Below are positions 871-40,979 of a stretch of 64,000 nt of DNA, in pieces. This DNA is from Macrostomum lignano. Lineage: Eukaryota. The notes under the pieces are model-generated. The model did no database searches. It was not told where the DNA came from and was given only the letters and a program-made list of their open reading frames with translations. Where the stretch lies: positions 186,001 through 250,000 of the forward strand of contig NIVC01000755.1 in the NCBI GenBank assembly GCA_002269645.1, written 5' to 3'. The position numbers and the translations under genes were made by a program. The first letter of the stretch is position 1; each line of letters starts with the position of its first letter.

Positions 871-949
871 ATAAGTAGCTAGTGCGACAATTTCCTTAGC
901 ATTATAGTGGCTCCTTTAAAATTCGCTCACTTTTACGTTTGAAATTGTG

Positions 950-4860: not shown

Positions 4861-4909
4861 ATGTTTAGCAGTTTTTTGTTTTTAAGGTGTTTTAATAAAA
4901 AAATCATTT

Positions 4910-4977: not shown

Positions 4978-5746
4978 TTTACAATTGGAGCACATGAATT
5001 GTGGCCCTTATAATTCAATTCTTACAGCAAGTCGGTTAGAGTAAAATTTTATGACATAATGAATTTCTCAGTCAGCCAGTATCAGTCTTAATTTAAGTTA
5101 GCAATATTGTTACGCAATTTTAATCAAGTCTTGTGTGCGTTTCTGTGGCACTGTTTTCACCTTGTTGTGATGCAATCTTTATCACAATTGAAATTCATCC
5201 AGTCAGTTTTTTCTCTAGCATTCTTACAATGCATTTCAAGTCGAAAATTTTGCTTGACCTTTGCAAAAAAGCATGTTTTTCGAATATTTAATCCCTTTAA
5301 AATTGAGCAATTTCTTAGCCAAGATGCATGTACCGTCCCAGGAAATTTTCTGATCGAATGGTGCAAGTTTGAAGAAAATCGGTTGAGCCATTTTTTCCGA
5401 AATCTATCGCATACCTACCCACATACAGACAACTCATTTTTAGTATATAGGATTTTCTCTAATCGATCACATAGATAGATAGATAGATAGACACAGACAG
5501 ACCATTTTTAGTATATAGGACTAGCAATCTACGCCCCCCGTTGGGGAGCCAAAGAAATGCAATCGCTACACGTTTTTTTAATAAGCTACATGTATCCTTG
5601 AAATCTTAAAAAATCTCCTGTCAAACCTTGTAAGCCTTGACATGTCAGTAATTCCCCACCACAAGCTTTAACATATCAACTCCCCCCTTGACATCTCAGC
5701 AATGCCCCCAATAAGCCTTGGAAATCTAAAAATATCTGTCAACCTT

Positions 5747-5814
5747 CTAACCCTAACCCTAGCCTAACCCTAACCCTAACCCTAACCCTAACCCTAACCC
5801 TAACCTAACCCTAA
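5747..5814. repeat. Interstitial telomere-type repeat (CCCTAA)n
   Basis: About 11 near-perfect units. Homologous tract at 15271-15361. Confidence 0.9.
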
Positions 5815-6729
5815 AGCATTGACATTTCAGTAATTCTCTCTAAGAGTCATTATAGCACTGCTACAGCATTATAGCGATTTCCTGCAAGCCTCGACATCGT
5901 AGGGATTCCCAAATGAATCTCTTAACTTCGACATGAAGCTTCTTTTATTTTTTACATTACGCTTTTTTATCAGCGATCCCTCCCCTGAGGAGGCATCAAA
6001 TAATGTAATAAAAAGTTTTCAATAAACTTTACATGATTGTTTACATGTAGCTTCTGACTTTAGCTTTGAAATCTCATTTATACCCCGTGAGCCTTGACAT
6101 CTCAGCTATTCCCCCCGTAAGCCTTGACATGTCAGCGATGGCCTCCATAAACCTTGAAATCTGAAAAATCCCCGTTAACCTTGAAACCCGATAAAATATA
6201 ACCCTCAACCCACACCTGACCTAAACCTAACTTTAACCCAACCTAAAGCCTTGAATCTCAGCAATTCTTCTCCCCTAAGCCTTGACATTTTAGTGATTCC
6301 TTCTTTAAGAATCACAGCACTGTAACGATTCCCTCCAAGCTTTGACATCATAGCAATTCCCAAATGAATCTTTTAACTTCGACATGACTTTTCTTTTATG
6401 TATACATAGTGCTACTTTTATTTTTTACATGACTCTTCTTCTATCAGCGACCCCCCCCGTGGCGAGCCAACAAAGAATGTAATAAAAAAATTGAGTAAAG
6501 TACATGAACTTTGAAGTAGCTTCTGACTTTTGCTTTGACATCTCAGCAACCCCCCCCCGTAATCTCAGTTATTCTCTGAGAGCCTTAACGTCTCAGTTTT
6601 TCTCCCCAGCACAGCATTATAGCTGCATTTATTTTTACATGACACCCTTCATGTCTGACATGACGCTTCTTTTATTCTACCATGATGCTTCTTAATTTTT
6701 TAAATGACACTTTCCTTAGTTTTTAAATG

Positions 6730-9700
6730 AGGCTTCTATGATTTTTTCATGACGCTTCTATGATTTTAACATGACGCTTCTATGACTTTTTTTACATGAC
6801 GCTTCTATGATTTTTTCTTGACGCTTCTATAATTTTTACATGACGCTTCTATGATTTTTTACATGACGCTTCTATGATTGTTTACATGACGCTTCTCTGA
6901 TTGTTTACATGACGCTTCTATGATTTTTTATAATAACGCTTTCTATGATTTTTAAATGACGCTTCTACGATTTTTTACATGACGCTTCTATGATTGTTTA
7001 CATGACGCTTCTATGATTGTTTACATGACGCTTCTATGATTTTTACATGACGCTTCTATGATTGTTTACATGACGCTTCTATGATTGTTTACATGACGCT
7101 TCTATGATTCATTACATGACGCTTCTATGATTTTTTACATGACGCTTCTATGATTGTTTACATGACGCTTCTATGATTGTTTACATGACGCTTCTATGAT
7201 TGTTTACATGACGCATCTATGATTTTTATGACGCTCTATGATTTTATATGACGCTTCTATGATTTTTACATGACGCTTCTATGATTGTTTACATGACGCT
7301 TCTATGATTTTTTACATGGCGCTTCTATGATTGTTTACATGACGCTTCTATGATTGTTTCATGACGCTTCTATGATTGTTTACATGACGCTTCTATGATT
7401 GTTTCATGACGCTTCTATGATTGTTTACATGACGCTTCTATGATTTTTATATGACGCTTCTATGATTGTTTACATGACGCTTCTATGATTTTTATATGAC
7501 GCTTCTATCATTTTTACATAACGCTTCTATGATTTTTATATGACGCTTCTATGATTGTTTACATGATGCTTCTATGATTTTTACATGGCGCTTCTATGAT
7601 TGTTTACATGACGCTTCTATGATTGTTTACATGACGCTTCTAGATTGTTTACATGACGCTTCTATGATTGTTTACATGACGCTTCTAGATTGTTTACATA
7701 ACGCTTCTAGGATTGTTTACATGACGCTTCTATGATTGTTTACATGACGCTTCTATGATTGTTTCATGACGCTTCTATGATTGTTTACATGACGCTTCTA
7801 TGATTGTTTACATGACGCTTCTACGATTTTGGCAGGATGATTCTATGATTTTACATGACGCTTCTATGATTTTTACATGACGCTTCTATGATTGTTTACA
7901 TGACGCTTCTATGATTCATTACATGACGCTTCTATGATTTTTTACATGACGCTTCTATGATTGTTTACATGACGCTTCTATGATTGTTTACATGACGCTT
8001 CTATGATTGTTTACATGACGCTTCTATGATTTTTATATGACGCTTCTATGATTTTTATATGACGCTTCTATGATTTTTACATGACGCTTCTATGATTGTT
8101 TACATGACGCTTCTATGATTTTTTACATGACGCTTCTATGATTGTTTACATGACGCTTCTATGATTGTTTCATGACGCTTCTATGATTGTTTACATGACG
8201 CTTCTATGATTGTTTCATGACGCTTCTATGATTGTTTACATGACGCTTCTATGATTTTTATATGACGCTTCTATGATTGTTTACATGACCCTACTATGAT
8301 TTTTTATATGACGCTTCTATCATTTTTACATACGCTTCTATGATTTTTATATGACGCTTCTATGATTGTTTACATGATGCTTCTATGATTTTTACATGGC
8401 GCTTCTATGATTGTTTACATGACGCTTCTATGATTGTTTACATGACGCTTCTAGATTGTTTACATGACGCTTCTATGATTGTTTACATGACGCTTCTAGG
8501 ATTGTTTACATAACGCTTCTAGATTGTTTACATGACGCTTCTATGACTGTTTACATGACGCTTCTATGATTGTTTCATGACGCTTCTATGATTGTTTACA
8601 TGACGCTTTAAGGATTTTTTACATGACGCTTCTACGATTTTGGCAGGATGATTCTATGATTTTACATGACGCTTCTATGATTTTTACATGACGCTTCTAT
8701 GATTTTTTACATGACGCTTCTACGATTTTGGCAGGACGATTCTACGATTTTACATGACGCTTCTATGATTTTTACATGACGCTTCTATGATTTTACATGA
8801 CGCTTCTATGATTTTTACATGACGCTTCTACGATTTTTACATGACGCTTCTATGATTTTTTACATGACGCTTCTATGATTGTTTCATGACGCTTCTATGA
8901 TTTTTACATGACGCTTCTATGATTGTTTACATTCTTCTGTGCTTGTTTACATGACGCTTCTATGATTGTTTAAATGACGCTTGAATGATTGTTTACATGA
9001 CGCTTTTATGATTTTTACATGGCGCTTCTATGATTGTTTACATGACGCTTCTATGATTGTTTACATGACGCTTCTATGATTGTTTACATGACGCTTCTAT
9101 GATTGTTTACATGACGCTTCTATGATTTTTACATGACGTTTCTATGATTGTTTCATGACGCTTCTATGATTGTTTACATGACGCTTCTATGATTTTTACA
9201 TGACGCTTCTATGATTGTTTACATGGCGCTTCTAAGATTGTTTACATGACGCTTCTATGATTGTTTCATGACGCTTCTATGATTGTTTACATGACGCTTC
9301 TATGATTTTGACATGACGCTTCTATGATTGTTTACATGACGCTTCTATGATTTTTACATGACGCTTCTATGCTTGTTTACATGACGCTTCTATGATTGTT
9401 TACATGACGCTTCTATGATTTTTACATGACGCTTCTATGATTGTTTAAATGACGCTTGAATGATTGTTTACATGACGCTTCTATGATTGTTTAAATGACG
9501 CTTGAATGATTGTTTACATGACGCTTTTATGATTTTTACTTGGCGCTTCTATGATTGTTTACATGACGCTTCTATGATTGTTTACATGACGCTTCTAGGA
9601 TTGTTTACATGACGCTTCTATGATTGTTTACATGACGCTTCTAGGATTGTTTACATGACGCTTCTAGATTGTTTACATGACGCTTCTATGATTGTTTACA

Positions 9701-10070
9701 TGACGCTTCTATGATTGTTTCATGACGCTTCTATGATTGTTTACATGACGCTTCTATGATTTTTACATGACGCTTCTATGATTGTTTATATGACGCTTCT
9801 ATGATTGTTTACATGACGCTTCTATGATTGTTTCATGACGCTTCTATGATTGTTTCATGACGCTTCTATGATTGTTTACATGACGCTTCTATGATTTTGA
9901 CATGACGCTTCTATGATTGTTTACATGACGCTTCTATGATTGTTTACATGACGCTTCTATGATTTTTACATGGCGCTTCTATGATTGTTTACATGCTTCT
10001 ATGATTTTTTAAATGACGCATCTATGATTTTTATATGACGCTTCTATGATTTTTACATGACGCTTCTTTT
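6730..10070. repeat. 22-23-bp minisatellite (ACATGACGCTTCTATGATTGTTT)n
   Basis: Direct reading. Same family as 16270-18472. Confidence 0.97.
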
Positions 10071-13408: not shown

Positions 13409-13486
13409 GATTTGCAGTCAAGTCAAAGTCAACCTAACTAGCTCAACGCAAACAGTAACGCGTACAGTCCAGCTTGACTCTATATA

Positions 13487-13762
13487 CTCAGCAACATTGA
13501 AAAGTCGCCACTCTATGCGCCAGTGATCAATTTCTCTTGGACTATTCTGAAATAAAAGATGCCAGAAAAACTGATCGGGGTAGCTTTAATCCGTCCAAAC
13601 CTCGCACACCGCTCCCCCACTCCATTCCTCAACTCAAGTCTGCCGGTGGCGTAGCTGAGTTGCGTCACTCGCAAATATTGAGAAAGACTTTACCTGCACT
13701 CTCTCAAAAGTGGCGACCACAGACGGAATCTTCTGTGATGCCGACTTTTCAATGTTGCTGAG
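13487..13762. mobile_element. 276-bp MITE-like element (24-bp TIR, TA flanks) in the 5S-SL spacer
   Basis: CTCAGCAACATTGAAAAGTCG(C/G)CA inverted at both ends, flanked by TA. Confidence 0.75.
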
Positions 13763-14068
13763 TATAATTAATTCATTGTTGGCGCCATCAACAAAGTTGT
13801 ACATGTACATATGCACATCCGCACGCATAGAGCGATCTAAGAAATTACATTTGATTATTGCAACTCGAAGAGATCTAGTATAGCCTGCACTCTGTACACG
13901 GCGATGCATATGCGCGCTATATCATGCTATGCTATGCTATGGTGCAACAACTAATTTACAACTTGCGGGTAAATAGAATATGTTTAAAATAATAGTAGGA
14001 CACGCTAAATCCAGAATTGCAATCAACCAACTATAATTAATTAATGTTTGTCTTTAGCTTTGTTAGGC

Positions 14069-14179
14069 AGCCGCGGTAGCGCGGCTTGTCAAAAATTGAG
14101 TAGACCGCTCAATTGGATCCACGCGGTGTCTTACCATGCAAAATTAAGAGTCTTCGCAGTAAGAGACCGTCGATACGGC
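14069..14179 (-). ncRNA. Spliced-leader RNA gene (leader variant ...TCTTAATTTTGCATG)
   Basis: 45-nt exon ending ATG, GTAAG donor, Sm site AATTTTTGA, terminal hairpin AGCCGCG-CTAC-CGCGGCT. Confidence 0.88.
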
Positions 14180-14747
14180 AAAGAGACGAGCTGGAACCAG
14201 CTCTCACTGATTGCACAGCTCTCCGTTTGAGCCTCGAGCCCTAGGGCAAATTATTTTGTTGAACTTTATCTACTCCAAGTAAGTTTTGACGACTAGTGCA
14301 GCATTATTTTGCACTACAGCTTGAAAAGAGCTGCGCGAAAAAGTATTTCTTTCTTTTAGCCGACATGTTTAGAAAGTGTGCACACAAACGCGCCGCCTAA
14401 TTGATTGATTAATTGATTGCTGCTATAAATCAAGTAAAATTGCCATGTGAGAGATGGAGATACTCGTAAAACTATTAATACACAGTTCATAAGTGCATTA
14501 GCGTTGCCGCGTGCTAATGCAAAGTGCGCATACAAAATATGAAACGCGAATCGAATCCCTTGACTTGATGGAGTGAGTGGAGTGGAACTCGAAAGGAATC
14601 AGCAGACCTATGCCGTATGGTAAAAATTCAAGCAGCATCCGGTTGGCGGGCGCGGGCGGATTGGTGGGCCTGGGCCTAAGTATTAATGCAGTAGCAGCAG
14701 CTGGAGTTAGTTGATGAGCGCGCGGCATGCAGTTAAAGAGGCAAAAA

Positions 14748-14866
14748 AGACAACAGCATTTGGTATTCCCAGGCGGTCACCCATCCAAGTACTAACCAAA
14801 CCCAACGTTGCTTAACTTCGGTGATCAGACGAGAACCGGTGTTTTCAACGTGGTATGGCCGTTGCC
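14748..14866 (-). rRNA. 5S rRNA gene
   Basis: 119 nt, GGCAACGGCCATACC...AGTACTTGGATGGGTGACCGCCTGGGAATACC..., followed by an oligo-T terminator. Confidence 0.97.
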
Positions 14867-15047
14867 ACTGGCTGATAGGAGCTGAGCTCATAATTAACCT
14901 GAACCTGCAGCTACATGTATATACGGACCATACGGTACGGATCAATTGTGGGCCGCCTCTCGTCTATACTCTAATAAATATATAATTAGTAATGCGGACG
15001 GATTTACCGCGCTCGTATAGTATATAGTAAACTATAGTGGTGATTAG

Positions 15048-18000
15048 ACTAGCAATCTACGCCCCCCGTTGGGGAGCCAAAGAAATGCAATACACGTTTT
15101 TTTAATAAGCTACATGTATCCTTGAAATCTTAAAAAATCTCCTGTCAAACCTTGTAAGCCTTGACACGTCAGTAATTCCCCCCACAAGCTTTAACATATC
15201 AACTCCCCCCCCTGACATCTCAGCAATGCCCCCAATAAGCCTTGAAAATCTAAAAATATCTGTCAACCTTCTAACCCTAATCCAAACCTAACCCTAACCC
15301 TAACCCTAGCCTAACCCTAGCCCTAACCCTAACCCTAACCCTAACCCTAACCTAACCCTAAAGCATTGAAATTTCAGTAATTCTCTCTAAGAGTCATTAT
15401 AGCACTACTACAGCATTATTGCGATTCCCTGCAAGCCTCGACATCGTAGGGATTCCCAAATGAATCTCTTAACTTCGACATGAAGCTTCTTTTATTTTTT
15501 ACATTACGCTTTTTTTATCAGCGATCCCTCCCCTGAGGAGGCATCAAATAATGTAATAAAAAGTTTTCAATAAACTACATGTAGCTTCTGGCTTTAGCCT
15601 TGAAATCTCATTTATACCCCAGTGAGCCTTGACATCTCAGCTATTCCCCCCGTAAGCCTTGACATGTCAGCGATGGCCCCCATAAACCTTGAAATCTAAA
15701 AAATCCCCTGTTAACCTTGAAACCCGATAAAATATAACCCTCAACCCACACCTGACCTAAACCTAACTTTAACCCAACCTAAAGCCTTGAAATCTCAGCA
15801 ATTCTTCTCCCCTAAGCCTTGACATTTTAGTGATTCCTTCTTTAAGAATCACAGCACTATAACGATTTCCACCAAGCTTTGACATCGTAGCAATTCCCAA
15901 ATGAATCTTTTAACTTCGACATGACCTTTCTTTTATGTATACTTAGTGCTACTTTTATTTTTTACATGACTCTTCTTCTATCAGCGCCTCCCCCCGTGGC
16001 GAGCCAACAAAGAATGCAATAAAAAATTGAGTAAAGTACATGAACTTTGAAGTAGCTTCTGACTTTTGCTTTGACATCTCAGAACCACCCCCCCCCCCGT
16101 AATCTCAGTTATTCTCTGAGAGCCTTGACGTCTCAGTTTTTCTCCCCAGCACAGCATTATAGCTGCATTTAATTTTTACATGACACCTTCATGTCTGACA
16201 TGACGCTTCTTTTATTCTACCATGATGCTTCTTAATTTTTTAAATGACACTTTCATTAGTCTTTAAATGAGGCTTCTATGATTTTTCATGACGCTTCTAT
16301 GATTTTTACATGATGCTTCTATGATGTTTATATGACGCTTCTATGATTTTTACATGACGCTTCTATGATTTTTTACATGACGCTTCTTTGATTTTTACAT
16401 GACGCTTCTATGATTGTTTACATGACGCTTCTATGATTGTTTGCACGACGCTTCTATGATTGTTTACATGACGCTTCTATGGTTTTTACATGACGCTTAT
16501 ATTTTTTACATGACGCTTCTATGATTGTTTAGATGACGCTTCTATGATTTTTTCATGACGCTTCTATGATTTTTACATGACGCTTCTATGATTGTTTACA
16601 TGACGCTTCTATGGCTTTTACATGACGCTTATATTTTTTACATGACGCTTCTATGATTGTTTACATGACGCTTCTATGATTGTTTACATGACGCTTCCAT
16701 GATGTTTATATGACGCTTCGATGATTTTTTACATGACGCTTCTATGATTGTTTACATGACGCTTCTATGATGTTTATATGACGCTTCTATGATTTTTTAC
16801 ATGACGCTTCAATGATTTTTACGTGACGCTTCTATGATTTTTTACATGACGCTTCTATGCTTTTTATATGACGCTTCTATGATTGTTTATATGACGTTTC
16901 TATAGTTTTTACATGACGCTTATATTTTTTACATGACGCTTCTATGATTGTTTACATGACGCTTCTATGATTTTTTCATGACGCTTCTATGATTTTTTAC
17001 ATGACGCTTCTATGATTGTTTACATGACGCTTCTATGGTTTTTACATGGCGCTTATATTTTTACATAACGCTTTTATGATTGTTTACATGACGCTTCTAT
17101 GATTTTTTACATGACGCTTCTATGATTGTTTACATGACGCTTCTATGATTTTTTACATGACGCTTCTATGATTGTTTACATGACGCTTCTATGATTTTTT
17201 ACATGACGCTTCTATGATTGTTTACATGACGCTTCTATGATGTTTACATGACGCTTCTATGATTTTTACATGACGCTTCTATGATTGTTTACATGACGCT
17301 TCTATGATTTTTACGTGATGCTTCTATGATGGTTTACATGATGCTTCTATGATTGTTTACATGACGCTTCTATGATTGTTTACATGACGCTTATATGATT
17401 TTTTCATGACGCTTCTATGATTTTTTACATGACGCTTCTATGATTGTTTACATGACGCTTCTATGGTTTTTACATGACGCTTATATTTTTACATGACGCT
17501 TCTATGATTGTTTACATGACGCTTCTATGATTGTTTACATGACGCTTCTATGATGTTTATATGACGCTTCTATGATTTTTTACATGACGCTTCTATGCTT
17601 TTTACATGACGCTTCTATGATTATTTCATGACGCTTCTACGATTTCTGCAGGACGCTTCTATGATTTTTACATGACGCTTCTATGATTTTTACATGACGC
17701 TTCTATGATTGTTTACATGACGCTTCTATGATTGTTTACATGACGCTTCTATGATTGTTTATATGACGCTTCTATTATTTTTACATGACGCTTCTAAGAT
17801 TTTTTACATGACGCTTCTATGATTGTTTACATGACGCTTCGATGATTGTTTACATGACGCTTCTATGATTTTTACATGACGCTTCTATGACTATTTACAT
17901 GACGCTTCTATGATTTTTACATAACGCTTTTATGATTTTTTACATGACGCTTTTATGATTTTTTACATGACGCTTCTATGATTGTTTACATGACGCTTCT

Positions 18001-18472
18001 ATGATTGTTTACATGACGCTTCTATGATTTTTTACATGACGCTTCTATGATTTTTACATGACGCTTCTATGACTATTTACATGACGCTTCTATGATTTTT
18101 ACATAACGCTTTTATGATTTTTTACATGACGCTTCTAGGATTGTTTACATGACGCTTCTATGATTGTTTACATGACGCTTCTATGATTGTTTACATGACG
18201 CTTCTATGATTTTTTACATGACGCTTCTATGATTTTTACATGACGCTTCTATGATTGTTTACATGACGCTTCTATGATTGTTTAAATGACGCTTCTATGA
18301 TTGTTTACATGATGCTTCTATGATTTTTTACATGACGCTTCTATGATTTTTACATGACGCTTCTATGATTGTTTACATGACGCTTCTATGATTGTTTACA
18401 TGACGCTTCTATGATTGTTTACATGACGCTTCTATGATTTTTACATAACGCTTTTATGATTTTTTACATGAC
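15048..18472 (+). mobile_element. Helentron-like element, near-copy of element C, truncated by the 5S-SL array
   Basis: Same ACTAGCAATCTACGCCCCCCGTTGGGGAGCC start, (CCCTAA)n at 15271-15361 and same minisatellite. The 3' module is missing. Confidence 0.55.
16270..18472. repeat. 22-23-bp minisatellite (ACATGACGCTTCTATGATTGTTT)n
   Basis: Direct reading. Joins abruptly to 5S-SL spacer sequence at 18473. Confidence 0.97.
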
Positions 18473-18719
18473 ATAGCAGCAATCAATTAATCAATCAATT
18501 AGGCGGCGCGTTTGTGTGCACACTTTCTAAACATGTCGGCTAAAAGAAAGAAATACTTTTTCGCGCAGCTCTTTTCAAGCTGTAGTGCAAAATAATGCTG
18601 CACTAGTCGTCAAAACTTACTTGGAGTAGATAAAGTTCAACAAAATAATTTGCCCTAGGGCTCGAGGCTCAAACGGAGAGCTGTGCACTCAGTGAGAGCT
18701 GGTTCCAGCTCGTCTCTTT

Positions 18720-18830
18720 GCCGTATCGACGGTCTCTTACTGCGAAGACTCTTAATTTTGCATGGTAAGACACCGCGTGGATCCAATTGAGCGATCTACT
18801 CAATTTTTGACAAGCCGCGCTACCGCGGCT
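18720..18830 (+). ncRNA. Spliced-leader RNA gene (variant ...TCTTAATTTTGCATG)
   Basis: Exon 18720-18764, GT donor, AATTGAG/CTCAATT hairpin, Sm site AATTTTTGA, 3' hairpin. Confidence 0.88.
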
Positions 18831-18896
18831 GCCTAACAAAGCTAAAAACAAACATTAATTAATTATAGTTGGTTGATTGCCGTATCGACGGTCTCT

Positions 18897-20156
18897 GACT
18901 GTTTTTACCCTGGTTGCCTTCTGGTAGCTTGTCTAAGGGTTGTGCGCAATCCGATTGGCTATGCCAATTTCAAAGGGTCCGCCCCGGAGGGGCTGTGCCT
19001 GTTCTAAAAATAAACCCTATTCTTTTTTCTAATTTCGGCCCTCGGCCTTGGTTTAGGGGGGGTGGTGCCCGGAGTGAGTAGGTTCTCTGGACTGCAGTGT
19101 GGCTAGGACGGGACTGAGCCCCCCGGTCGAACCCGCCCTGCAGGAAAGAACGACCAATTCACAAAGGTGTACGGTAGACCCAGTAGCATGCCAGCCCTGA
19201 GGCTGAGCACCCGGGCTGCAGGCCGGCAAGCTGCCTGCTTTAGGGCTATGGTGCTCCTCCCCACTGCCATTCTTTTTTTCTGGGCTGGCATCCCAGCGCT
19301 GTTTTATCCCTAGCTTTGTGCCTTTGTGGCTTTTTATTCTTTTATTCTTTTATCTGGCCAATAGAAGCCTTCCAATTCTTGGAGTTATGAGCTCTGCCCT
19401 TGCCCGGTCCATCTTGCCCTGTCCTCGGGTCCATCTCCTGGCTCCTGCTGTAAGGTCCCTGCTTGCGTGTCTCTGGCTCTCATCCTGACAGTGGATTGGT
19501 GTCCTGGGAAGGATGTTCGTCCCGTACCGGGGACAACCGGCTGAGTCCGGAGTCCTCTTGCCCTGGGTGCCTCTTCTCCCGACCCCTTGGCCTGGCCCCC
19601 AATAATGAGCTGGATAGGCGATGCCCTTGGGTTGGTAGCAATAGAGGTGGACCTGGACGCCTGGAGTCTCCCCCTCGGATACAAGCCTTCCAGACTCACT
19701 CCAAAATAGAGCTGGGTAGTGAAAAGCCTTGAGGCTCGAGGCCTGCAGTTACCGAGTGCTGTATAGGATCGCTCTTGGTTAATAGCTGCCCAGACTCTCT
19801 CCAATAGTTAGCCCCTTTCCAAGACTTCTGGGTTTCCCCGCTCTTGGACGGCTTTTTCAGTAATTCCAATTCTGTTTTTTTCGCGCACTCCCGAGGACCT
19901 GTCTGCTGGGGGGTGGCCTGGGTGGACTCGGTCCTAGCACCGTCCCTGATTCCACTGTTTGGGTTGGCGGTGTCTTGTACCGTAGGTTTGGGTCAAATTC
20001 GCCCCCCCCGCGCTTTGAGCCGGGTCCAATCCAATCCATGGGGTATCTCGGGCCCTGGACAGATACTGCCTTGGCCCCTGGAAGTGCCCCTCGCGGCAGA
20101 GCCCACCCCAGGGCTGATCCGCGGGTCCCCCTAGGACCCTTTCGTTTAACAACAAC
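18897..20156 (+). mobile_element. 1260-bp non-autonomous non-LTR-retrotransposon-like insertion inside an SL exon
   Basis: ATCGACGGTCTCT duplicated at 18884-18896 and 20157-20169. The 3' end is hairpin GGGTCC-CCCTA-GGACCC plus TTTAACAACAAC. No RT ORF seen. Confidence 0.78.
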
Positions 20157-20262
20157 ATCGACGGTCTCTTACTGCGAAGACTCAATATTTTGCATGGTAA
20201 GACACCGCGTGGATCCAATTGAGCGATCTACTCAATTTTTGACAAGCCGCGCTACCGCGGCT
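20157..20262 (+). pseudogene. Disrupted SL RNA gene (nt 6-111; nt 1-18 lie at 18879-18896)
   Basis: SL sequence resumes at ATCGACGG directly after the AAC tail and lacks its first 5 nt and upstream flank. Confidence 0.85.
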
Positions 20263-20568
20263 GCCTAACAAAGCTAAAGACAAACATTAATTAATTATAG
20301 TTGGTTGATTGCAATTCTGGATTTAGCGTGTCCTACTATTATTTTAAACATATTCTATTTACCCGCAAGTTGTAAATTAGTTGTTGCACCATAGCATAGC
20401 ATAGCATGATATAGCGCGCATATGCATCGCCGTGTACAGAGTGCAGGCTATACTAGATCTCTTCGAGTTGCAATAATCAAATGTAATTTCTTAGATCGCT
20501 CTATGCGTGCGGATGTGCATATGTACATGTACAACTTTGTTGATGGCGCCAACAATGAATTAATTATA

Positions 20569-20844
20569 CTCAGCAACATTGAAAAGTCGGCATCACAGAA
20601 GATTCCGTCTGTGGTCGCCACTTTTGAGAGAGTGCAGGTAAAGTCTTTCTCAATATTTGCGAGTGACGCAACTCAGCTACGCCACCGGCAGACTTGAGTT
20701 GAGGAATGGAGTGGGGGAGCGGTGTGCGAGGTTTGGACGGATTAAAGCTACCCCGATCAGTTTTTCTGGCATCTTTTATTTCAGAATAGTCCAAGAGAAA
20801 TTGATCACTGGCGCATAGAGTGGCGACTTTTCAATGTTGCTGAG
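20569..20844. mobile_element. 276-bp MITE-like element in spacer (also 22202-22477, 23835-24109, 25467-25742)
   Basis: 24-bp TIR with 1 mismatch and TA on both sides, present in every unit. Confidence 0.75.
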
Positions 20845-21097
20845 TATATAGAGTCAAGCTGGACTGTACGCGTTACTGTTTGCGTTGAGCTAGTTAGGTT
20901 GACTTTGACTTGACTGCAAATCACCACTATAGTTTACTATATACTATACGAGCGCGGTAAATCCGTCCGCATTACTAATTATATATTTATTAGAGTATAG
21001 ACGAGAGGCGGCCCACAATTGATCCGTACCGTATGGTCCGTATATACATGTAGCTGCAGGTTCAGGTTAATTATGAGCTCAGCTCCTATCAGCCAGT

Positions 21098-21216
21098 GGC
21101 AACGGCCATACCACGTTGAAAACACCGGTTCTCGTCTGATCACCGAAGTTAAGCAACGTTGGGTTTGGTTAGTACTTGGATGGGTGACCGCCTGGGAATA
21201 CCAAATGCTGTTGTCT
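21098..21216 (+). rRNA. 5S rRNA gene
   Basis: 119 nt; helix I pairs GGCAACGGC with GCTGTTGTC; boxes A and C present; TTTTTT terminator. Confidence 0.98.
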
Positions 21217-21784
21217 TTTTTGCCTCTTTAACTGCATGCCGCGCGCTCATCAACTAACTCCAGCTGCTGCTACTGCATTAATACTTAGGCCCAGGCCCAC
21301 CAATCCGCCCGCGCCCGCCAACCGGATGCTGCTTGAATTTTTACCATACGGCATAGGTCTGCTGATTCCTTTCGAGTTCCACTCCACTCACTCCATCAAG
21401 TCAAGGGATTCGATTCGCGTTTCATATTTTGTATGCGCACTTTGCATTAGCACGCGGCAACGCTAATGCACTTATGAACTGTGTATTAATAGTTTTACGA
21501 GTATCTCCATCTCTCACATGGCAATTTTACTTGATTTATAGCAGCAATCAATTAATCAATCAATTAGGCGGCGCGTTTGTGTGCACACTTTCTAAACATG
21601 TCGGCTAAAAGAAAGAAATACTTTTTCGCGCAGCTCTTTTCAAGCTGTAGTGCAAAATAATGCTGCACTAGTCGTCAAAACTTACTTGGAGTAGATAAAG
21701 TTCAACAAAATAATTTGCCCTAGGGCTCGAGGCTCAAACGGAGAGCTGTGCACTCAGTGAGAGCTGGTTCCAGCTCGTCTCTTT

Positions 21785-21895
21785 GCCGTATCGACGGTCT
21801 CTTACTGCGAAGACTCAATATTTTGCATGGTAAGACACCGCGTGGATCCAATTGAGCGATCTACTCAATTTTTGACAAGCCGCGCTACCGCGGCT
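21785..21895 (+). ncRNA. Spliced-leader RNA gene (variant ...TCAATATTTTGCATG)
   Basis: GCCGTATCGACGGTCTCTTACTGCGAAGACTCAATATTTTGCATG|GTAAG, Sm site, 3' hairpin. Confidence 0.9.
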
Positions 21896-22730
21896 GCCTA
21901 ACAAAGCTAAAGACAAACATTAATTAATTATAGTTGGTTGATTGCAATTCTGGATTTAGCGTGTCCTACTATTATTTTAAACATATTCTATTTACCCGCA
22001 AGTTGTAAATTAGTTGTTGCACCATAGCATAGCATAGCATGATATAGCGCGCATATGCATCGCCGTGTACAGAGTGCAGGCTATACTAGATCTCTTCGAG
22101 TTGCAATAATCAAATGTAATTTCTTAGATCGCTCTATGCGTGCGGATGTGCATATGTACATGTACAACTTTGTTGATGGCGCCAACAATGAATTAATTAT
22201 ACTCAGCAACATTGAAAAGTCGGCATCACAGAAGATTCCGTCTGTGGTCGCCACTTTTGAGAGAGTGCAGGTAAAGTCTTTCTCAATATTTGCGAGTGAC
22301 GCAACTCAGCTACGCCACCGGCAGACTTGAGTTGAGGAATGGAGTGGGGGAGCGGTGTGCGAGGTTTGGACGGATTAAAGCTACCCCGATCAGTTTTTCT
22401 GGCATCTTTTATTTCAGAATAGTCCAAGAGAAATTGATCACTGGCGCATAGAGTGGCGACTTTTCAATGTTGCTGAGTATATAGAGTCAAGCTGGACTGT
22501 ACGCGTTACTGTTTGCGTTGAGCTAGTTAGGTTGACTTTGACTTGACTGCAAATCACCACTATAGTTTACTATATACTATACGAGCGCGGTAAATCCGTC
22601 CGCATTACTAATTATATATTTATTAGAGTATAGACGAGAGGCGGCCCACAATTGATCCGTACCGTATGGTCCGTATATACATGTAGCTGCAGGTTCAGGT
22701 TAATTATGAGCTCAGCTCCTATCAGCCAGT

Positions 22731-22849
22731 GGCAACGGCCATACCACGTTGAAAACACCGGTTCTCGTCTGATCACCGAAGTTAAGCAACGTTGGGTTTG
22801 GTTAGTACTTGGATGGGTGACCGCCTGGGAATACCAAATGCTGTTGTCT
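22731..22849 (+). rRNA. 5S rRNA gene
   Basis: Same sequence as 21098-21216. Confidence 0.98.
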
Positions 22850-23417
22850 TTTTTGCCTCTTTAACTGCATGCCGCGCGCTCATCAACTAACTCCAGCTGC
22901 TGCTACTGCATTAATACTTAGGCCCAGGCCCACCAATCCGCCCGCGCCCGCCAACCGGATGCTGCTTGAATTTTTACCATACGGCATAGGTCTGCTGATT
23001 CCTTTCGAGTTCCACTCCACTCACTCCATCAAGTCAAGGGATTCGATTCGCGTTTCATATTTTGTATGCGCACTTTGCATTAGCACGCGGCAACGCTAAT
23101 GCACTTATGAACTGTGTATTAATAGTTTTACGAGTATCTCCATCTCTCACATGGCAATTTTACTTGATTTATAGCAGCAATCAATTAATCAATCAATTAG
23201 GCGGCGCGTTTGTGTGCACACTTTCTAAACATGTCGGCTAAAAGAAAGAAATACTTTTTCGCGCAGCTCTTTTCAAGCTGTAGTGCAAAATAATGCTGCA
23301 CTAGTCGTCAAAACTTACTTGGAGTAGATAAAGTTCAACAAAATAATTTGCCCTAGGGCTCGAGGCTCAAACGGAGAGCTGTGCACTCAGTGAGAGCTGG
23401 TTCCAGCTCGTCTCTTT

Positions 23418-23528
23418 GCCGTATCGACGGTCTCTTACTGCGAAGACTCTTAATTTTACATGGTAAGACACCGCGTGGATCCAATTGAGCGATCTACTCA
23501 ATTTTTGACAAGCCGCGCTACCGCGGCT
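23418..23528 (+). ncRNA. Spliced-leader RNA gene (variant ...TCTTAATTTTACATG)
   Basis: Same architecture; third leader variant. Confidence 0.88.
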
Positions 23529-24362
23529 GCCTAACAAAGCTAAAGACAAACATTAATTAATTATAGTTGGTTGATTGCAATTCTGGATTTAGCGTGTCCT
23601 ACTATTATTTTAAACATATTCTATTTACCCGCAAGTTGTAAATTAGTTGTTGCACCATAGCATAGCATAGCATGATATAGCGCGCATATGCATCGCCGTG
23701 TACAGAGTGCAGGCTATACTAGATCTCTTCGAGTTGCAATAATCAAATGTAATTTCTTAGATCGCTCTATGCGTGCGGATGTGCATATGTACATGTACAA
23801 CTTTGTTGATGGCGCCAACAATGAATTAATTATACTCAGCAACATTGAAAAGTCGGCATCACAGAAGATTCCGTCTGTGGTCGCCACTTTTGAGAGAGTG
23901 CAGGTAAAGTCTTTCTCAATATTTGCGAGTGACGCAACTCAGCTACGCCACCGGCAGACTTGAGTTGAGGAATGGAGTGGGGAGCGGTGTGCGAGGTTTG
24001 GACGGATTAAAGCTACCCCGATCAGTTTTTCTGGCATCTTTTATTTCAGAATAGTCCAAGAGAAATTGATCACTGGCGCATAGAGTGGCGACTTTTCAAT
24101 GTTGCTGAGTATATAGAGTCAAGCTGGACTGTACGCGTTACTGTTTGCGTTGAGCTAGTTAGGTTGACTTTGACTTGACTGCAAATCACCACTATAGTTT
24201 ACTATATACTATACGAGCGCGGTAAATCCGTCCGCATTACTAATTATATATTTATTAGAGTATAGACGAGAGGCGGCCCACAATTGATCCGTACCGTATG
24301 GTCCGTATATACATGTAGCTGCAGGTTCAGGTTAATTATGAGCTCAGCTCCTATCAGCCAGT

Positions 24363-24481
24363 GGCAACGGCCATACCACGTTGAAAACACCGGTTCTCGT
24401 CTGATCACCGAAGTTAAGCAACGTTGGGTTTGGTTAGTACTTGGATGGGTGACCGCCTGGGAATACCAAATGCTGTTGTCT
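24363..24481 (+). rRNA. 5S rRNA gene
   Basis: Same sequence as 21098-21216. Confidence 0.98.
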
Positions 24482-25049
24482 TTTTTGCCTCTTTAACTGC
24501 ATGCCGCGCGCTCATCAACTAACTCCAGCTGCTGCTACTGCATTAATACTTAGGCCCAGGCCCACCAATCCGCCCGCGCCCGCCAACCGGATGCTGCTTG
24601 AATTTTTACCATACGGCATAGGTCTGCTGATTCCTTTCGAGTTCCACTCCACTCACTCCATCAAGTCAAGGGATTCGATTCGCGTTTCATATTTTGTATG
24701 CGCACTTTGCATTAGCACGCGGCAACGCTAATGCACTTATGAACTGTGTATTAATAGTTTTACGAGTATCTCCATCTCTCACATGGCAATTTTACTTGAT
24801 TTATAGCAGCAATCAATTAATCAATCAATTAGGCGGCGCGTTTGTGTGCACACTTTCTAAACATGTCGGCTAAAAGAAAGAAATACTTTTTCGCGCAGCT
24901 CTTTTCAAGCTGTAGTGCAAAATAATGCTGCACTAGTCGTCAAAACTTACTTGGAGTAGATAAAGTTCAACAAAATAATTTGCCCTAGGGCTCGAGGCTC
25001 AAACGGAGAGCTGTGCACTCAGTGAGAGCTGGTTCCAGCTCGTCTCTTT

Positions 25050-25160
25050 GCCGTATCGACGGTCTCTTACTGCGAAGACTCAATATTTTGCATGGTAAGA
25101 CACCGCGTGGATCCAATTGAGCGATCTACTCAATTTTTGACAAGCCGCGCTACCGCGGCT
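25050..25160 (+). ncRNA. Spliced-leader RNA gene (variant ...TCAATATTTTGCATG)
   Basis: Same sequence as 21785-21895. Confidence 0.9.
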
Positions 25161-25995
25161 GCCTAACAAAGCTAAAGACAAACATTAATTAATTATAGTT
25201 GGTTGATTGCAATTCTGGATTTAGCGTGTCCTACTATTATTTTAAACATATTCTATTTACCCGCAAGTTGTAAATTAGTTGTTGCACCATAGCATAGCAT
25301 AGCATGATATAGCGCGCATATGCATCGCCGTGTACAGAGTGCAGGCTATACTAGATCTCTTCGAGTTGCAATAATCAAATGTAATTTCTTAGATCGCTCT
25401 ATGCGTGCGGATGTGCATATGTACATGTACAACTTTGTTGATGGCGCCAACAATGAATTAATTATACTCAGCAACATTGAAAAGTCGGCATCACAGAAGA
25501 TTCCGTCTGTGGTCGCCACTTTTGAGAGAGTGCAGGTAAAGTCTTTCTCAATATTTGCGAGTGACGCAACTCAGCTACGCCACCGGCAGACTTGAGTTGA
25601 GGAATGGAGTGGGGGAGCGGTGTGCGAGGTTTGGACGGATTAAAGCTACCCCGATCAGTTTTTCTGGCATCTTTTATTTCAGAATAGTCCAAGAGAAATT
25701 GATCACTGGCGCATAGAGTGGCGACTTTTCAATGTTGCTGAGTATATAGAGTCAAGCTGGACTGTACGCGTTACTGTTTGCGTTGAGCTAGTTAGGTTGA
25801 CTTTGACTTGACTGCAAATCACCACTATAGTTTACTATATACTATACGAGCGCGGTAAATCCGTCCGCATTACTAATTATATATTTATTAGAGTATAGAC
25901 GAGAGGCGGCCCACAATTGATCCGTACCGTATGGTCCGTATATACATGTAGCTGCAGGTTCAGGTTAATTATGAGCTCAGCTCCTATCAGCCAGT

Positions 25996-26114
25996 GGCAA
26001 CGGCCATACCACGTTGAAAACACCGGTTCTCGTCTGATCACCGAAGTTAAGCAACGTTGGGTTTGGTTAGTACTTGGATGGGTGACCGCCTGGGAATACC
26101 AAATGCTGTTGTCT
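25996..26114 (+). rRNA. 5S rRNA gene
   Basis: Same sequence as 21098-21216. Confidence 0.98.
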
Positions 26115-26605
26115 TTTTTGCCTCTTTAACTGCATGCCGCGCGCTCATCAACTAACTCCAGCTGCTGCTACTGCATTAATACTTAGGCCCAGGCCCACCA
26201 ATCCGCCCGCGCCCGCCAACCGGATGCTGCTTGAATTTTTACCATACGGCATAGGTCTGCTGATTCCTTTCGAGTTCCACTCCACTCACTCCATCAAGTC
26301 AAGGGATTCGATTCGCGTTTCATATTTTGTATGCGCACTTTGCATTAGCACGCGGCAACGCTAATGCACTTATGAACTGTGTATTAATAGTTTTACGAGT
26401 ATCTCCATCTCTCACATGGCAATTTTACTTGATTTATAGCAGCAATCAATTAATCAATCAATTAGGCGGCGCGTTTGTGTGCACACTTTCTAAACATGTC
26501 GGCTAAAAGAAAGAAATACTTTTTCGCGCAGCTCTTTTCAAGCTTTAGTGCACAATAGTGCACAACAACTGGTTCCAGCATGCGAACTGTTTGCTTTGCC
26601 TTATC

Positions 26606-27092
26606 TTCTTGTTGTTAAACCGGGGACGGGAAGCTGTGGCTGCCGCTGGATGACGGGGGCCTATCTTCGAGGGGCATAAATCCCGAGCGGCTCAGGTTTG
26701 GACCAGGATTCATGGCCTGGAAAAGTACTCTTTTGGGCGCTACTAACTCAATATCCATGGACTAAGACGCCGCCGACCCATAGTGGAATCAGGAACGGTG
26801 CTAGGACCGAGTCTACCCAAGCCAGGTGATTTTTTTACGGGGGGATACACCAAGTTAAAAGTGCTATGTCAGAGTCACATGGTAGCATGTATAGCAACAA
26901 AGGGCAACAAAAAAGTTTTGGTCAGGCTCTTCGGGGGGATATTCCCCCTATCCCCCGCCCTCCCTACGCCCCTGGAAAATACCCGAGTGTGCGCGCGAAA
27001 AAATTTAGAAAAATTTTGGAAAAGCGGTCCGAGAGTGGGATTACCAAAGGTCTACGGAATGAGTGGAGAGTCTGGGCAAACTTATTCACCAA
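26606..27092 (-). mobile_element. Diverged relative of the SL-inserted element (3' portion)
   Basis: Shares the GTTTAACAACAA end and internal blocks, e.g. GTGGAATCAGG(G/A)ACGGTGCTAGGACCGAGTC and GGAGAGTCTGGGCA, with the reverse complement of 19780-20156. Confidence 0.75.
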
Positions 27093-28866
27093 GTCAAATG
27101 TTTTATATGGGTTTCCCCTCTCTCTCTCTGACAATGTCTACAATCGTCGATGCTTCTGGTGAATTAAATAAGTCGAAGGTTCGGTAGGTTTCTTTCGATC
27201 CAACCCTTAACAAAGATGTTTATTTCTTTCTGCGAGCGTAGTTTCTGATGGTTGCAATTTCTGACAGGATATTGATCACGCAAATTTGTTAAGCAATTCA
27301 GTGAAAATGCGGCCACAGGTTAGTTATCGATACTGTTGCGCGAATTGACGTTTGTCCAGATTTATCTTATCTTTTTGCTATCTATTAGAGAGATAGAAAT
27401 CTCTCTTTGTTAGATCGGAATATTAGAGTTCAGGCTCGATTGTTGAGGCAAGCTAGCGGAGCAGTTGAGGAGGCGAAGAGGCGGAGAGCCGAGGGCGGCG
27501 AGGGGAGGGGACAATGGGAACCGGCTTCATTCTCACTGAATGCTAGTATATATATGATTTCTATAACACATTTCATTGGTGTTCGCTTCACGCAATAGCA
27601 TCTTTACTACCGGACCGCACAAGCATGTGCTGTACTTTCCTGATAGAAAAACCTTCTGAAGTTCGCATTAGACTAAAAAATAACATTGGGCATAACATGC
27701 TTTAAAGATCACTTCACTCACTTGTGAGAAGTGTGATGATGGGATCTTCATCTAACTCCCTAACGCTGTCGAGACATAGCACATCACGAGTCAGATGCGC
27801 TGCAGGTTTCTGTGAATCAACTCAGATTTGTAAGGCTGCAAATCTCCGGAAGCATTCACATGAAAAGTAGGTGATTCCTGCTGAGTAGGCTTGTCTATCA
27901 TTAAAATGGCACTGTCGCTCTGGCAGTTTTGAAGCTTTGACGGGCAACCAAGCAGTTTGGTTCACAGCCAACGAGCGAAATGCTGCAACAGCATCCCAGT
28001 ATTCGGGGCAGTCATTGAATCCTCTGCGACATCGAATGCAGGAAAAACCGTTTTCGACATGGTCTTGTGTGAAGCTCATGAAGAGGACCGTGTCGTGCAC
28101 GCCTGTTCTGATCAGACTCTGAAACAGGCTTCAAGGATTGCAGGCTGACTTGTCAGCCCTCGTGAAAGCTCAGTCCGTTGAAAACTTTGCCATCGCGTTT
28201 AAGGAACTTTAACTTTCCAAGCCAATCAATCCATCCGTCGATTTCCTTCAGTCTGTCATTCAAATTATCAGCAGCAATGGAATTGTATTATGTCGAATCG
28301 TTGGTAAGGTCAAATAATTGATCAGCCATCTTACAAAATTAAGCCGTTCCTAGCACGGTTGGAGATGCCTATATGAACTGCATAGAATGCTGTCATATTT
28401 GCGTAGGGCGTCTGTCTAAATTTGTTCTGTGTAGCCTATAAGAATTATCGTTCCCACGCGAATGATCTTTAGTGTTTAAATAAAAGGACAGACAGTGGAG
28501 GCGCTCGCTTCACATTTCTCTCGCCCGCCTCTGAACCGAGGAATGAGACGGCTCAACACCCAACGCTCGCTGACACTTCCATTGAGTTGGCTCCTGGTCG
28601 CAAACGATTGCAGCCACGTTCAATCCCTCCTTTCAGGATGCCAGACATTCTCCCAGCATTTTCCCAAGCCGCCATGCACCGGCCAGGTGAATGGTGAACC
28701 AGAAAATGTCCAATAGGCTGTATCCATTTCGAAAAACACCCTTTAGTCACACTGCAACGAATTCATTTGCCACGAAATGAGTTTTGCCACCGGAATCGGT
28801 GCCACAGTCCTCAAAGCCAACAATCGAATCCCAATAATGCAAAGCAGCAGAGGCCACGATGCCATC

Positions 28867-30567
28867 GGGTCTACGACAATTGACTGCCACTATTTGACTG
28901 CCGACAAAATGACTGCCGACAATTTGACTGCCGGCAATTTGACTGCCAACAATTTGACTGCTGCAAAATGCAAAATGAATGCGGAAGGCCTTTTAATTTC
29001 AATAGATGGAATGGCAGCGAAGAGTTTTGTGCTGCTTTGCGCATATATTTATATTTACAACGAACTGCGCGAGATTCATGAGGGGCCAGGGGAGGTGCGA
29101 ACAGGTGGTGTGGCGTGATAGGTTACGCCAACCCCCTTGGCTTAGCGAGCCGGCTAACTTGGTGCGCAACCACCCCACCTCAGCTAGACAGAGGTTGGGG
29201 GGTTTCCAGTGCGGCTGCACTGGTGCTGCCGGTCGCGTAGTCTGGCCGCCACACTGCCGACAAAATGACTGCCGACAATTTAACTGCCGACAATTTGACT
29301 GCCAACAATTTGACTGCTGACAAAATGATTGCGGCAATTTGACTGCCAGCAAAATGACTGCCAGCAAAATGACTGCCAGCAAAATGACTGCCAAAATGAC
29401 TGCCTAAAAAACTCTCCAGTCTCTTTATTCATGATCGTATTTATGCAAGGCTAGCAAGGCTTTTTACAATGAACAAAAATGCAAGCTACATTTGGCTTTC
29501 AACAATACTTGCATGTATATCTACTAATGTTCAAACGGATCCTCCACATGTACCAGCGTAGCTGTGTTCAATGAATGCTGCTTATAGAGCTAGCCGTGCG
29601 CTAGCGTATCACTAACTTTAGCTTTGATTAGGCCTAATAAAGCTTTTCTGATAGGAGGAGTATGTGGCATTTTTTTAATTTGAAAGAATCAATAAGATTA
29701 AAATATGAGATTAATATGACATGGGAGAAAGAAAACCCTATAAACAGCATTGATTGAACACAGCTACATGTAAAAGATCAGTTTGACCATTAGTATAGCA
29801 ATCTTGCGACCCCTTCGGGGCGGCCAATAAGCAAGAGACGAAAATTATAAATGTGTATCCTATTTGTCTTGACATCTCAGAAATTTCCCGTTGTAAGCCT
29901 TGTCATCTTAGCAATTCCCCAGTAAGCATTGAGATCTCAGCAATTCCCCCAGTAAGCCTCAAAATCACAGCAATCGCCCCCGTAAGCCTTAACATCCCAA
30001 GACGTAAACATTTTTAAATGACGCTTCCTTTATATTTTAGGTTACGTTTCTTATATGTGCAACCTTACGCTGCTTTTATGTTTGATGAATTTTCTTTTGT
30101 TTTACATGACGGCTTTTATGTTTGACATGACTTTGCTTCTCTTTTTTGATATGACGCTTCTTTTACTAGTAGATAAACATGCACGTATTGTTGAAAGCCA
30201 ATGTAGCTTCCATTTTTGCTCATGTAAAAAGCCTTGCTAGCCTTGCATAAATACGATCATTAATAAAGAGACTGGAGTGTTTTTAGGCAGTCATTTTGCT
30301 GGCAGTCAAGTTGCCGCAGTCATTTTTTCGGCAGTAAAATTGTCGGCAGTCAAATTCACCGCAGTCATTTTGTCCGCAGTTATTTTGTGTGCAGTCATTT
30401 TGTCCGCAGTCAAATTGCTCGGCAGTCAAATTGCTCGGCAGTCAAATTGCTCGGCAGTCAAATTGCTCGGCAGTCAAATTGCTCGGCAGTCAAATTGCTC
30501 GGCAGTCAAATTGTCCGCAGTTAAAATTGACCGCAGTCAAATTGTGGCAGTCAATTGTCGTGCACCC
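28867..30567. mobile_element. Foldback (Mutator-like) non-autonomous element with minisatellite-built inverted arms
   Basis: Termini GGGT(CT/GC)ACGACAATTGACTGCCAC are inverted. ATGCCATC is duplicated at 28859-28866 and 30569-30576 (9 bp with 1 mismatch). Inner inverted arms are 29390-29526 and 30167-30298. Confidence 0.8.
29796..30165 (+). mobile_element. 5' fragment of a Helentron-like element nested in the foldback loop
   Basis: TAGCAATCTTGCGACCCCTTCGGGG start and CCTTGACATCTCAG-type repeats resembling 5520-6350. Confidence 0.45.
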
Positions 30568-40524: not shown

Positions 40525-40586
40525 GTGAGGAACGGCGTCTTATGTGTGATTTGATAGTTAAAGAAGTTCTTTGGGAGCCCGACAAT

Positions 40587-40979
40587 TTAGGTTAGTGTTT
40601 AGGTTAGGGTTTGGGTTTGGGTTTAGGTTTGGGTTTAGGTCTCGGTTTGGGTTTCGGTTTTGTTTTGGGTTTGGGTTTGGGTTTGGCTTAGGGTTTGGGT
40701 TTGGGTGGGGGTTTGGGTTTGGCTTAGGTTTTGGGTTTGGGTCTGGGTTTGGGTTTGGCTTAGGGTTTGGGTTTGGGTCTGGGTTTGGGTTTGGCTTAGG
40801 GTTTGGGTTTGGGTGGGGGTTTGGGTTTGGGTTTGGGTTTGGCTTGGGTTTTGGATTTGGGTCTGGGTTTGGCTTTGGCTTTGGCTTGGGGTTTGGGTTT
40901 GGGTGGGGGTTTGGGTTTGTGTCTGGATTTGGGTTTGGCTTAGTGTTTGGGTCTGGGTTAGGCTCAGGGTTAGGGTTTG
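40587..40979. repeat. Telomere-like (TTTGGG/TTAGGG)n tract in DYRK intron 3
   Basis: Direct reading. Confidence 0.9.

Follow-up and report, generated by a model that had tools for sequence, protein, structure and literature searches.

A 64,000-nt stretch of Macrostomum lignano DNA (contig NIVC01000755.1, positions 186,001 to 250,000; hereafter the window, to whose first base all coordinates refer) contains a tandem array in which spliced leader (SL) RNA genes are linked to 5S rRNA genes. One SL copy at the left edge of this array is interrupted by a non-coding insert of 1,260 bp, here called E1 (18897-20156, + strand). We read E1 as a non-autonomous retroposon that was inserted through target-primed reverse transcription (TPRT) and was probably copied from an antisense transcript of an SL locus bearing the same 3' tail, an interpretation that we hold to be about evenly poised between right and wrong.

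The anatomy of the insertion fits TPRT: there is a duplication of 13-18 bp of the SL target, the 3' terminus is defined and carries (AAC)3, the insert is non-coding, and inverted termini are missing. An earlier note on this DNA had recognized the same signature, and each of its elements agrees. A second fragment with an identical 12-nt terminus is found at a degenerate SL 5' end, in flanks of its own, which argues for homing and not for chance. Two related fragments suggest a small retroposon family that homes to the SL gene; they are not proof of one.

The interrupted SL copy and its junctions

The array spans 18475-26561 (+) and is built of 1,633-bp units, each combining a single SL RNA gene with a single 5S rRNA gene. 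The exon of the SL has the sequence GCCGTATCGACGGTCTCTTACTGCGAAGACTC(AAT/TTA)ATTTTGCATG and is followed by GTAAG. Two exon variants, AAT and TTA at SL nt 33-35, alternate along the array, and one unit has the additional change G41A. The sequence is identical to the published Macrostomum lignano SL at 40 of 44 positions (PMC5173321), which suits a Macrostomum-type flatworm but sets it apart from the reference M. lignano sequence.

In a normal unit, ctcgtctcttt leads into the SL RNA gene segment, GCCG...gttggttgattg, and this into caattctgg. The order at the interrupted locus is promoter, SL nt 1-160, SL nt 1-18, E1, SL nt 6-160, and downstream sequence. The first of these SL pieces (SLa; 18720-18879, +) is a complete SL RNA gene segment of 160 nt, from SL +1 to gattg, with the TTA exon; its normal caattctgg continuation is replaced by a second SL start. 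This second start, SL nt 1-18 or GCCGTATCGACGGTCTCT (18879-18896, +), shares its first two bases, GC, with the gattgc at the end of SLa. Beyond E1 the SL picks up again at nt 6 (20157), and SL nt 6-160 (20157-20311, +) run on into the 100% homogeneous array. The coordinates and the sequence of an insert of 1,260 bp between SL nt 18 and a resumption at nt 6 are those that the earlier note had given.

The target duplication, ATCGACGGTCTCT, is exact over 13 nt (18884-18896 and 20157-20169). It can be extended to 18 nt with one mismatch, 17 of the 18 positions being identical between the left copy (18884-18901, +) and the right copy (20157-20174), and both lengths had been reported before. A duplication of SL nt 6-18 corresponds to an opening of the bottom strand at SL nt 5/6 and of the top strand 13 (or 18) nt downstream.

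The novel junctions are three, not two: J1 at 18879, J2 at 18896/7, and J3 at 20156/7. J1 joins the end of the complete SL segment head-to-tail to SL +1 with the 2-nt GC overlap, and its breakpoint is the SL transcription start. The interrupted SL copy is not an ordinary member of the array, since it stands head-to-tail behind a complete one. Between SLa and the resumed copy there are four differences, of which three are those that distinguish the two exon variants of the array. A restart exactly at the transcription start suggests, from this one junction, an RNA intermediate made from the SL promoter; a duplication at the DNA level would strike the SL +1 base just by chance.

The 118-nt SL RNA has a good predicted fold (z = -3.3), in which the AAUUUUUGA Sm site is single-stranded and which also has stem-loops and a 3' hairpin. 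SL nt 1-10 are unpaired in it. The earlier note had placed the 3' junction of the insert at the first SL hairpin, CCGT/ACGG; this 4-bp hairpin is absent from the predicted fold and is not supported as an RNA structure, and the argument drawn from it is weak. At the DNA level, the SL 5' end is a quasi-palindrome with TCGA at nt 7-10 and a CCGT/ACGG inverted repeat.

The insert

The longest open reading frame (ORF) of E1 is 139 aa, and no Pfam domain was detected in any of the six frames, which bears out the earlier statement that the insert holds no ORF for a reverse transcriptase (RT) or an endonuclease. Nothing credible was found with Rfam at E <= 10 across the E1 locus. The insert is GC-rich, as had been noted (56.6% vs. 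44.1% in the array unit), and it is depleted in CpG, with an observed/expected ratio of 0.50 against 1.05 in the array unit. This depletion suggests a different mutational or epigenetic history.

Near its 3' end E1 has a 6-bp hairpin, GGGTCC-CCCTA-GGACCC (20123-20139, +; arms at 20123-20128 and 20134-20139), and its last letters are TTTCGTTTAACAACAAC, with the terminus GTTTAACAACAA(C) at 20144-20156 (+). Both the hairpin and a simple-repeat terminus, here with (AAC)3, had been described from the letters alone and are present. Terminal or sub-terminal inverted repeats between the first and the last 80 nt of E1 were at chance level (score 13 vs. 12.7 ± 2.1). The search for a hepatitis delta virus (HDV)-like ribozyme at the 5' junction gave none with Rfam at E <= 10, and a home-made descriptor matched at 19025 alone, within the noise of the shuffles. 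No conserved RNA structure was seen in the 3' module shared with the relative described below (z = -1.6 and +1.0).

Two other identities were considered for E1 or parts of it. The last ~60 nt are not a diverged SL promoter, which was ruled out (z = -1.2 and 1.4). A processed retrocopy of a trans-spliced mRNA was rejected too: E1 is preceded by just SL nt 1-18(23) and not by the full 45-nt SL exon, and it lacks poly(A) and coding sequence.

A relative at the right edge of the array

A BLAST search of the window with E1 revealed a relative on the minus strand at the right array edge, 27093-26609, collinear with E1 19774-20156. This locus (E2; 26609-27093, -) covers the whole extent of the homology to the E1 3' module (19774-20156, +), with collinear matches in inverted orientation, and is a diverged counterpart of E1's last ~380 nt. 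The homology is clear over ~140 nt upstream of a conserved core (z = 5.8) and weak over the last ~150 nt (z = 3.2), and the two sequences diverge 5' of ~380-480 nt from the 3' end. The core itself (19914-19976, +) is 63 nt long and 87% identical to 26824-26764. A 31-nt motif of the core occurs twice in the window and not once in shuffles. The terminus GTTTAACAACAA likewise has only two sites in the 64 kb, each of them adjoining an SL 5' end, so that both copies in the census of this window (2/2) lie at such an end.

At the right array edge, unit positions 1-124 (26438-26561) give way to an SL promoter that has diverged and lost some of its sequence, and to nt 1-11 of an SL-like start, GCCTTATCTTC. 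The promoter remnant together with these 11 nt occupies 26562-26608 (+; alignment score 24 vs. 14.1 ± 2.3; 2 of 500 shuffles), GCCTTATCTTC itself being at 26598-26608. It directly precedes the reverse complement of GTTTAACAACAA, and 50 bases on the SL start returns as GCCTATCTTC (26659-26668). Between these direct repeats lies a 50-nt fragment ending in GTTTAACAACAA (T2; 26609-26658, -), antisense to the SL. The repeat is 11 bp long, SL-derived, with one indel; 10 of 2000 shuffles give such a repeat.

Further on, a diverged SL-like sequence at 26729-26838 (+), approximately SL nt 14-95 with a Sm-like GATTTTTTTAC, represents the rest of an old SL gene and has the conserved core on its opposite strand (scores 26 vs. 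17.5 ± 2.1, 0 of 300 shuffles, and 45.5 vs. 22.5 ± 4.8, 0 of 200). The counterpart of SL nt 28-57 is collinear at 26746-26773 and leads on to the Sm-like motif. The simplest reading of the right-edge locus is an old SL gene that escaped homogenization and received, antisense and after nt 11, a 50-nt 5'-truncated tail of the element seen in E1, with an 11-bp duplication of SL nt 1-11. The tail looks like a heavily 5'-truncated copy.

E1 is flanked by sense SL from nt 6 onward, and E2 by antisense SL from nt 11 to nt 1 and then the promoter; as the flanks differ, these are two separate junctions. E1 and the right-edge copy have opposite orientations relative to the SL. A remainder of the target SL past E2 was looked for at 27050-28900 and none was found, and a 12-nt repeat candidate at 27366 was not significant. 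Between its SL-like nt 11 and 14, the old SL gene also holds ~55 nt (26669-26744) with no counterpart in the canonical SL, and an even earlier insertion at this site may account for them.

The core shared by E1 and E2 is the intron-like part of the old SL gene; E1 carries it antisense to SL-intron-like sequence. The reverse complement of 19960-19976 reads GGTACAAGACACCGCC, where the SL has GGTAAGACACCGCG, and contains AAGACACCGC, which is SL nt 47-56. In antisense, the last ~380 nt of E1 match the whole of a tail-bearing old SL locus, made up of the tail, the SL gene, and a flank of ~250 bp, and E1 is for this reason best read as a retro-copy of an antisense transcript of such a locus.

The view that the insert is unrelated to the array needs correcting; its best-conserved block is a diverged antisense piece of an SL gene, so E1 is not wholly unrelated. 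The proposal of an internally deleted autonomous element gives way to what looks like a composite carrying an antisense SL-gene remnant. The third junction at SL +1, the right-edge relative, and the SL-derived core of E1 go beyond the earlier note.

Proposed mechanism

RT and endonuclease would be supplied by a mobile element elsewhere in the genome and would recognize the short tail; the enzyme would nick the SL 5' end and prime reverse transcription there. The true mobile-element part would be the tail of ~50-60 nt only, and the rest of E1 would be flanking sequence carried along. A truncated tail lying antisense in an SL gene would turn transcripts that read into it from that side into substrates. 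E1 would then be the retro-copy of one such antisense read-in transcript, which its tail re-targeted to a canonical SL gene, where it now lies in sense. The start at SL +1 may be the 5' end of a co-transcript of SL(1-18) and E1 made from the SL promoter, joined by the 2-nt GC microhomology, or J1 may reflect template switching or jumping onto an SL precursor.

For E1 the priming nick would fall at nt 5/6 of the bottom strand, and for the right-edge copy at nt 11/12 of the top strand. These positions mirror each other in the canonical SL, where each lies one base past TCGA on its strand, and the two staggers, 13 and 11 nt, are of similar length. Homogenization of tandem arrays is weaker at their edges, and survival of the insertions there would fit this expectation.

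Taken together, these steps would describe an SL-homing retroposon system in Macrostomum-type flatworms. Its endonuclease would open the SL 5' end at mirror positions (bottom 5/6, top 11/12), and such opening of a quasi-palindrome would permit insertion in either orientation. Antisense truncated tails would make read-in transcripts mobile, members that arose in this way would carry an antisense SL segment, and sense copies would be expressed from the SL promoter. This joint scheme is speculative, and we think it improbable as a whole.

Search for a partner and further copies

No RT or endonuclease was found in E1 or near E2 (26600-29000) by six-frame Pfam searches, nor in the ORFs of the window of at least 120 aa. 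The only matches in 26600-29000 were weak P/THAP9-like transposase remnants to the right of E2. The six-frame concatenate of E1 had no match in a collection of 5.8 billion proteins, and an exact-protein look-up for further copies gave no match either. ORFs of the SL-5S unit matched, in the protein collection, only foreign ORFs derived from 5S. A 19-mer of the core, compared with metagenome and prokaryote genome contigs, produced three 22-nt chance matches in actinobacterial contigs.

A literature search found no report of an SL-specific element from flatworms. In parasitic flatworms, partial SL sequences occur beside long terminal repeat (LTR) elements and long interspersed elements (LINEs), and they have been read as re-integrated trans-spliced transcripts of transposable elements (PMC12582326); this is a different phenomenon from E1.

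Weighing the interpretation

Several observations weigh against a tail-borne retroposon. The number of copies is two, both within one window, and both stand at array edges, where DNA-level rearrangements accumulate. The searches for a partner were negative in E1, near E2 and in the window ORFs, and E1 had no relative in any searched collection. The 3'-terminal ~150 nt are less conserved (z = 3.2) than the internal core (87%), which is the reverse of what is usual for a tail recognized by RT, and the tail amounts to (AAC)3 only. Neither an HDV-like ribozyme nor another processing signal was found at the 5' junction (Rfam at E <= 10; descriptor scan). The likeness of the E1 core to the SL is significant through the homology to E2 and not on its own. 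In the old target, TCTT takes the place of the TCGA palindrome in both copies of the duplication, so the symmetry of the nicks may be coincidental.

Orientation is a further difficulty. The proposal of an SL-specific family gains from the second junction with the same terminus at a degenerate SL 5' end; it loses by the opposite orientation of the two copies, since insertion both ways is unusual for known SL-specific elements. An RLE-type partner (one with a restriction-like endonuclease) and a kinship with NeSL, SLACS, and CZAR are conjecture.

Alternative explanations

The main alternative, which we consider unlikely, is a rearrangement at the DNA level without any retroelement. An E2-like fragment, the old SL gene with its flank, would have been captured in inverted orientation when a staggered break in the SL's quasi-palindromic 5' region underwent repair or replication template switching. 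The E1 3' module is indeed an inverted paralogue of the right-edge locus, diverged SL gene included, and both copies lie at array edges. The solitary inverted SL-5S unit at 13409-15045 shows that pieces of the array have been shuffled as DNA here; the TCGA and the CCGT/ACGG inverted repeat in the SL 5' end, and the negative RT search, point the same way. However, end joining does not usually yield a clean duplication of 13-18 bp around 1.26 kb. It also leaves the identical 12-nt terminus, placed exactly at both junctions despite their differing flanks, to be accounted for, as well as the 11-bp duplication that the right-edge tail fragment has of its own and an extra SL copy that starts exactly at the transcription start.

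Somewhat less probable still is that E1 and E2 are 5'-truncated copies of one autonomous SL-specific non-LTR element whose 3' untranslated region (UTR) exceeds 1.2 kb, with the antisense SL-like core as a part of that UTR. TPRT typically gives 5' truncation, and the copies agree at their 3' ends, differ at their 5' ends, and show a target duplication. We disfavor this explanation because 1,260 nt hold no trace of an ORF or a domain in any frame and because the right-edge insertion is confined to 50 nt by its own duplication; the homology of the copies, moreover, ends after ~380-480 nt.

A DNA transposon that targets small RNA genes is highly improbable. E1 would be a non-autonomous derivative of a P-like or Dada-like element, and the P/THAP9-like remnant to the right of E2 what is left of the autonomous copy. 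In its favor are the weak matches to TNP-like RNase H N and C domains on the strand of E2 (28004-28827), but the 5' end of E1 has no counterpart near the transposase remnant. P elements have inverted termini of 31 bp and 8-bp duplications, neither of which was seen here. Dada elements target small RNA genes and lack terminal inverted repeats, yet they make duplications of 6-7(8) bp and have sub-terminal inverted repeats (PMC3706591), whereas the duplications here are 13-18 and 11 bp and no such repeats are present.

A chimeric join in the assembly of this highly repetitive, satellite-rich region is equally hard to credit: satellites and 100% identical array units dominate the window and the head-to-tail SL-SL junction is odd, but such a join makes neither a precise 13-bp target duplication nor the related second junction found at the opposite end of the array.

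The array and the surrounding DNA

Interior array units are 99.7-100% identical in pairwise comparison. At the Rfam gathering threshold, 5S rRNA was the sole family found, with genes at 21098, 22731, 24363, and 25996 (+) and at 14748-14866 (-). SL motifs lie at 18725, 18884, 20157, 21790, 23423, and 25055 (+) and at 14162 (-). The left array edge consists of unit positions 1-245, the SL upstream and promoter region (18475-18719, +), which is 99-100% identical to the other units and adjoins a 23-mer satellite.

The solitary inverted unit (13409-15045, -) measures 1,637 bp, exactly one period plus 4 bp. It sits inside one copy of a duplicated segment, while the other copy has no such interruption and shows the empty site at ~5505-5530, and it looks like the re-integration of one excised or circular unit. 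The segments 5519-8932 and 15047-18469 are duplicates with ~92% identity.

To the right of E2, weak matches to the RNase H-like domain of P-element/THAP9-type transposases lie on the minus strand at 28004-28070 and 28557-28827 (E = 0.002 and 0.02). They mark a degraded DNA transposon just past the end of the E2 homology, which may have truncated the E2 locus.

The satellite load of the window is very high (930-4866, 6658-10067, 16198-18472, and 37770-62216), with 23-mer families and many C/T-rich minisatellites, and most of its long ORFs are accordingly repeat artefacts. Interstitial telomere-type repeats, (CCCTAA)n with TTAGGG-like variants, stand beside satellites at 5747-5814, 15271-15361, and 40586-40979.

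Implications and comparison with known systems

Elements that home to SL genes are known from trypanosomatids and nematodes. If the retroposon interpretation is true, flatworms would add one more origin of this habit, probably an independent one, and would do so as a phylum where target switching of NeSL-clade elements is already on record. Insertions that survive at the array edges would serve as a natural marker of SL-5S array turnover, and the case would show the birth of a non-autonomous family from a truncated tail and transduced flanking DNA. Its unusual traits, if the interpretation is correct, would be the lack of autonomy, the insertion in both orientations, and the antisense SL remnant carried along. 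With two non-coding copies in one window as evidence, we regard it as a lead rather than a finding.

SINE-like non-autonomous retroposons (SINE, short interspersed element) share just a 3' tail with a "stringent" partner LINE. In the same way, the copies described here have only a short 3' tail in common, marked by a stem-loop and a brief terminal repeat, and the body is unrelated to any coding element. They differ in lacking an RNA polymerase III head, and the body appears to be transduced flanking DNA that includes an antisense SL gene. R2-type elements are co-transcribed with their hosts' genes, and L1-mediated chimeric retrocopies arise by template switching. The extra SL copy resembles both in that it begins at the transcription start, which fits RNA made from a host promoter or end-to-end template jumping, as judged from a single junction; unlike in R2-type elements, no HDV-like ribozyme was found at the 5' junction.

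Dada elements offer a parallel in their choice of multicopy small RNA genes and in the absence of terminal inverted repeats (PMC3706591). Their duplication of 6-7 bp, their sub-terminal inverted repeats, and their DDE transposase have no equivalent in E1.

The trypanosomatid elements SLACS, CZAR, and CRE1-2 (CRE clade) share with E1 a position within the SL exon of tandemly arrayed SL genes and a duplicated target. For CZAR and SLACS the insertion site lies between mini-exon nt 11 and 12 (PMC5814959), and the right-edge tail fragment also follows SL nt 11, although in antisense. The junction of E1 lies in sense at nt 5/6. The trypanosomatid elements are autonomous, with RT and a restriction-like endonuclease, whereas E1 is non-coding and showed no ORF with RT, CCHC, or PD-(D/E)xK in the six-frame Pfam search; the two copies here are, in addition, oppositely oriented, and the host phylum is another. 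NeSL-1 of nematodes is similar in that it targets SL1 exons. In planarians, the targets of the NeSL-clade R5/LIN elements have diversified to 28S, tRNA-Arg, and tRNA-Glu genes, so flatworms carry RLE-type elements with diversified targets (PMC4640811), which makes these elements a plausible source of an SL-specific partner.

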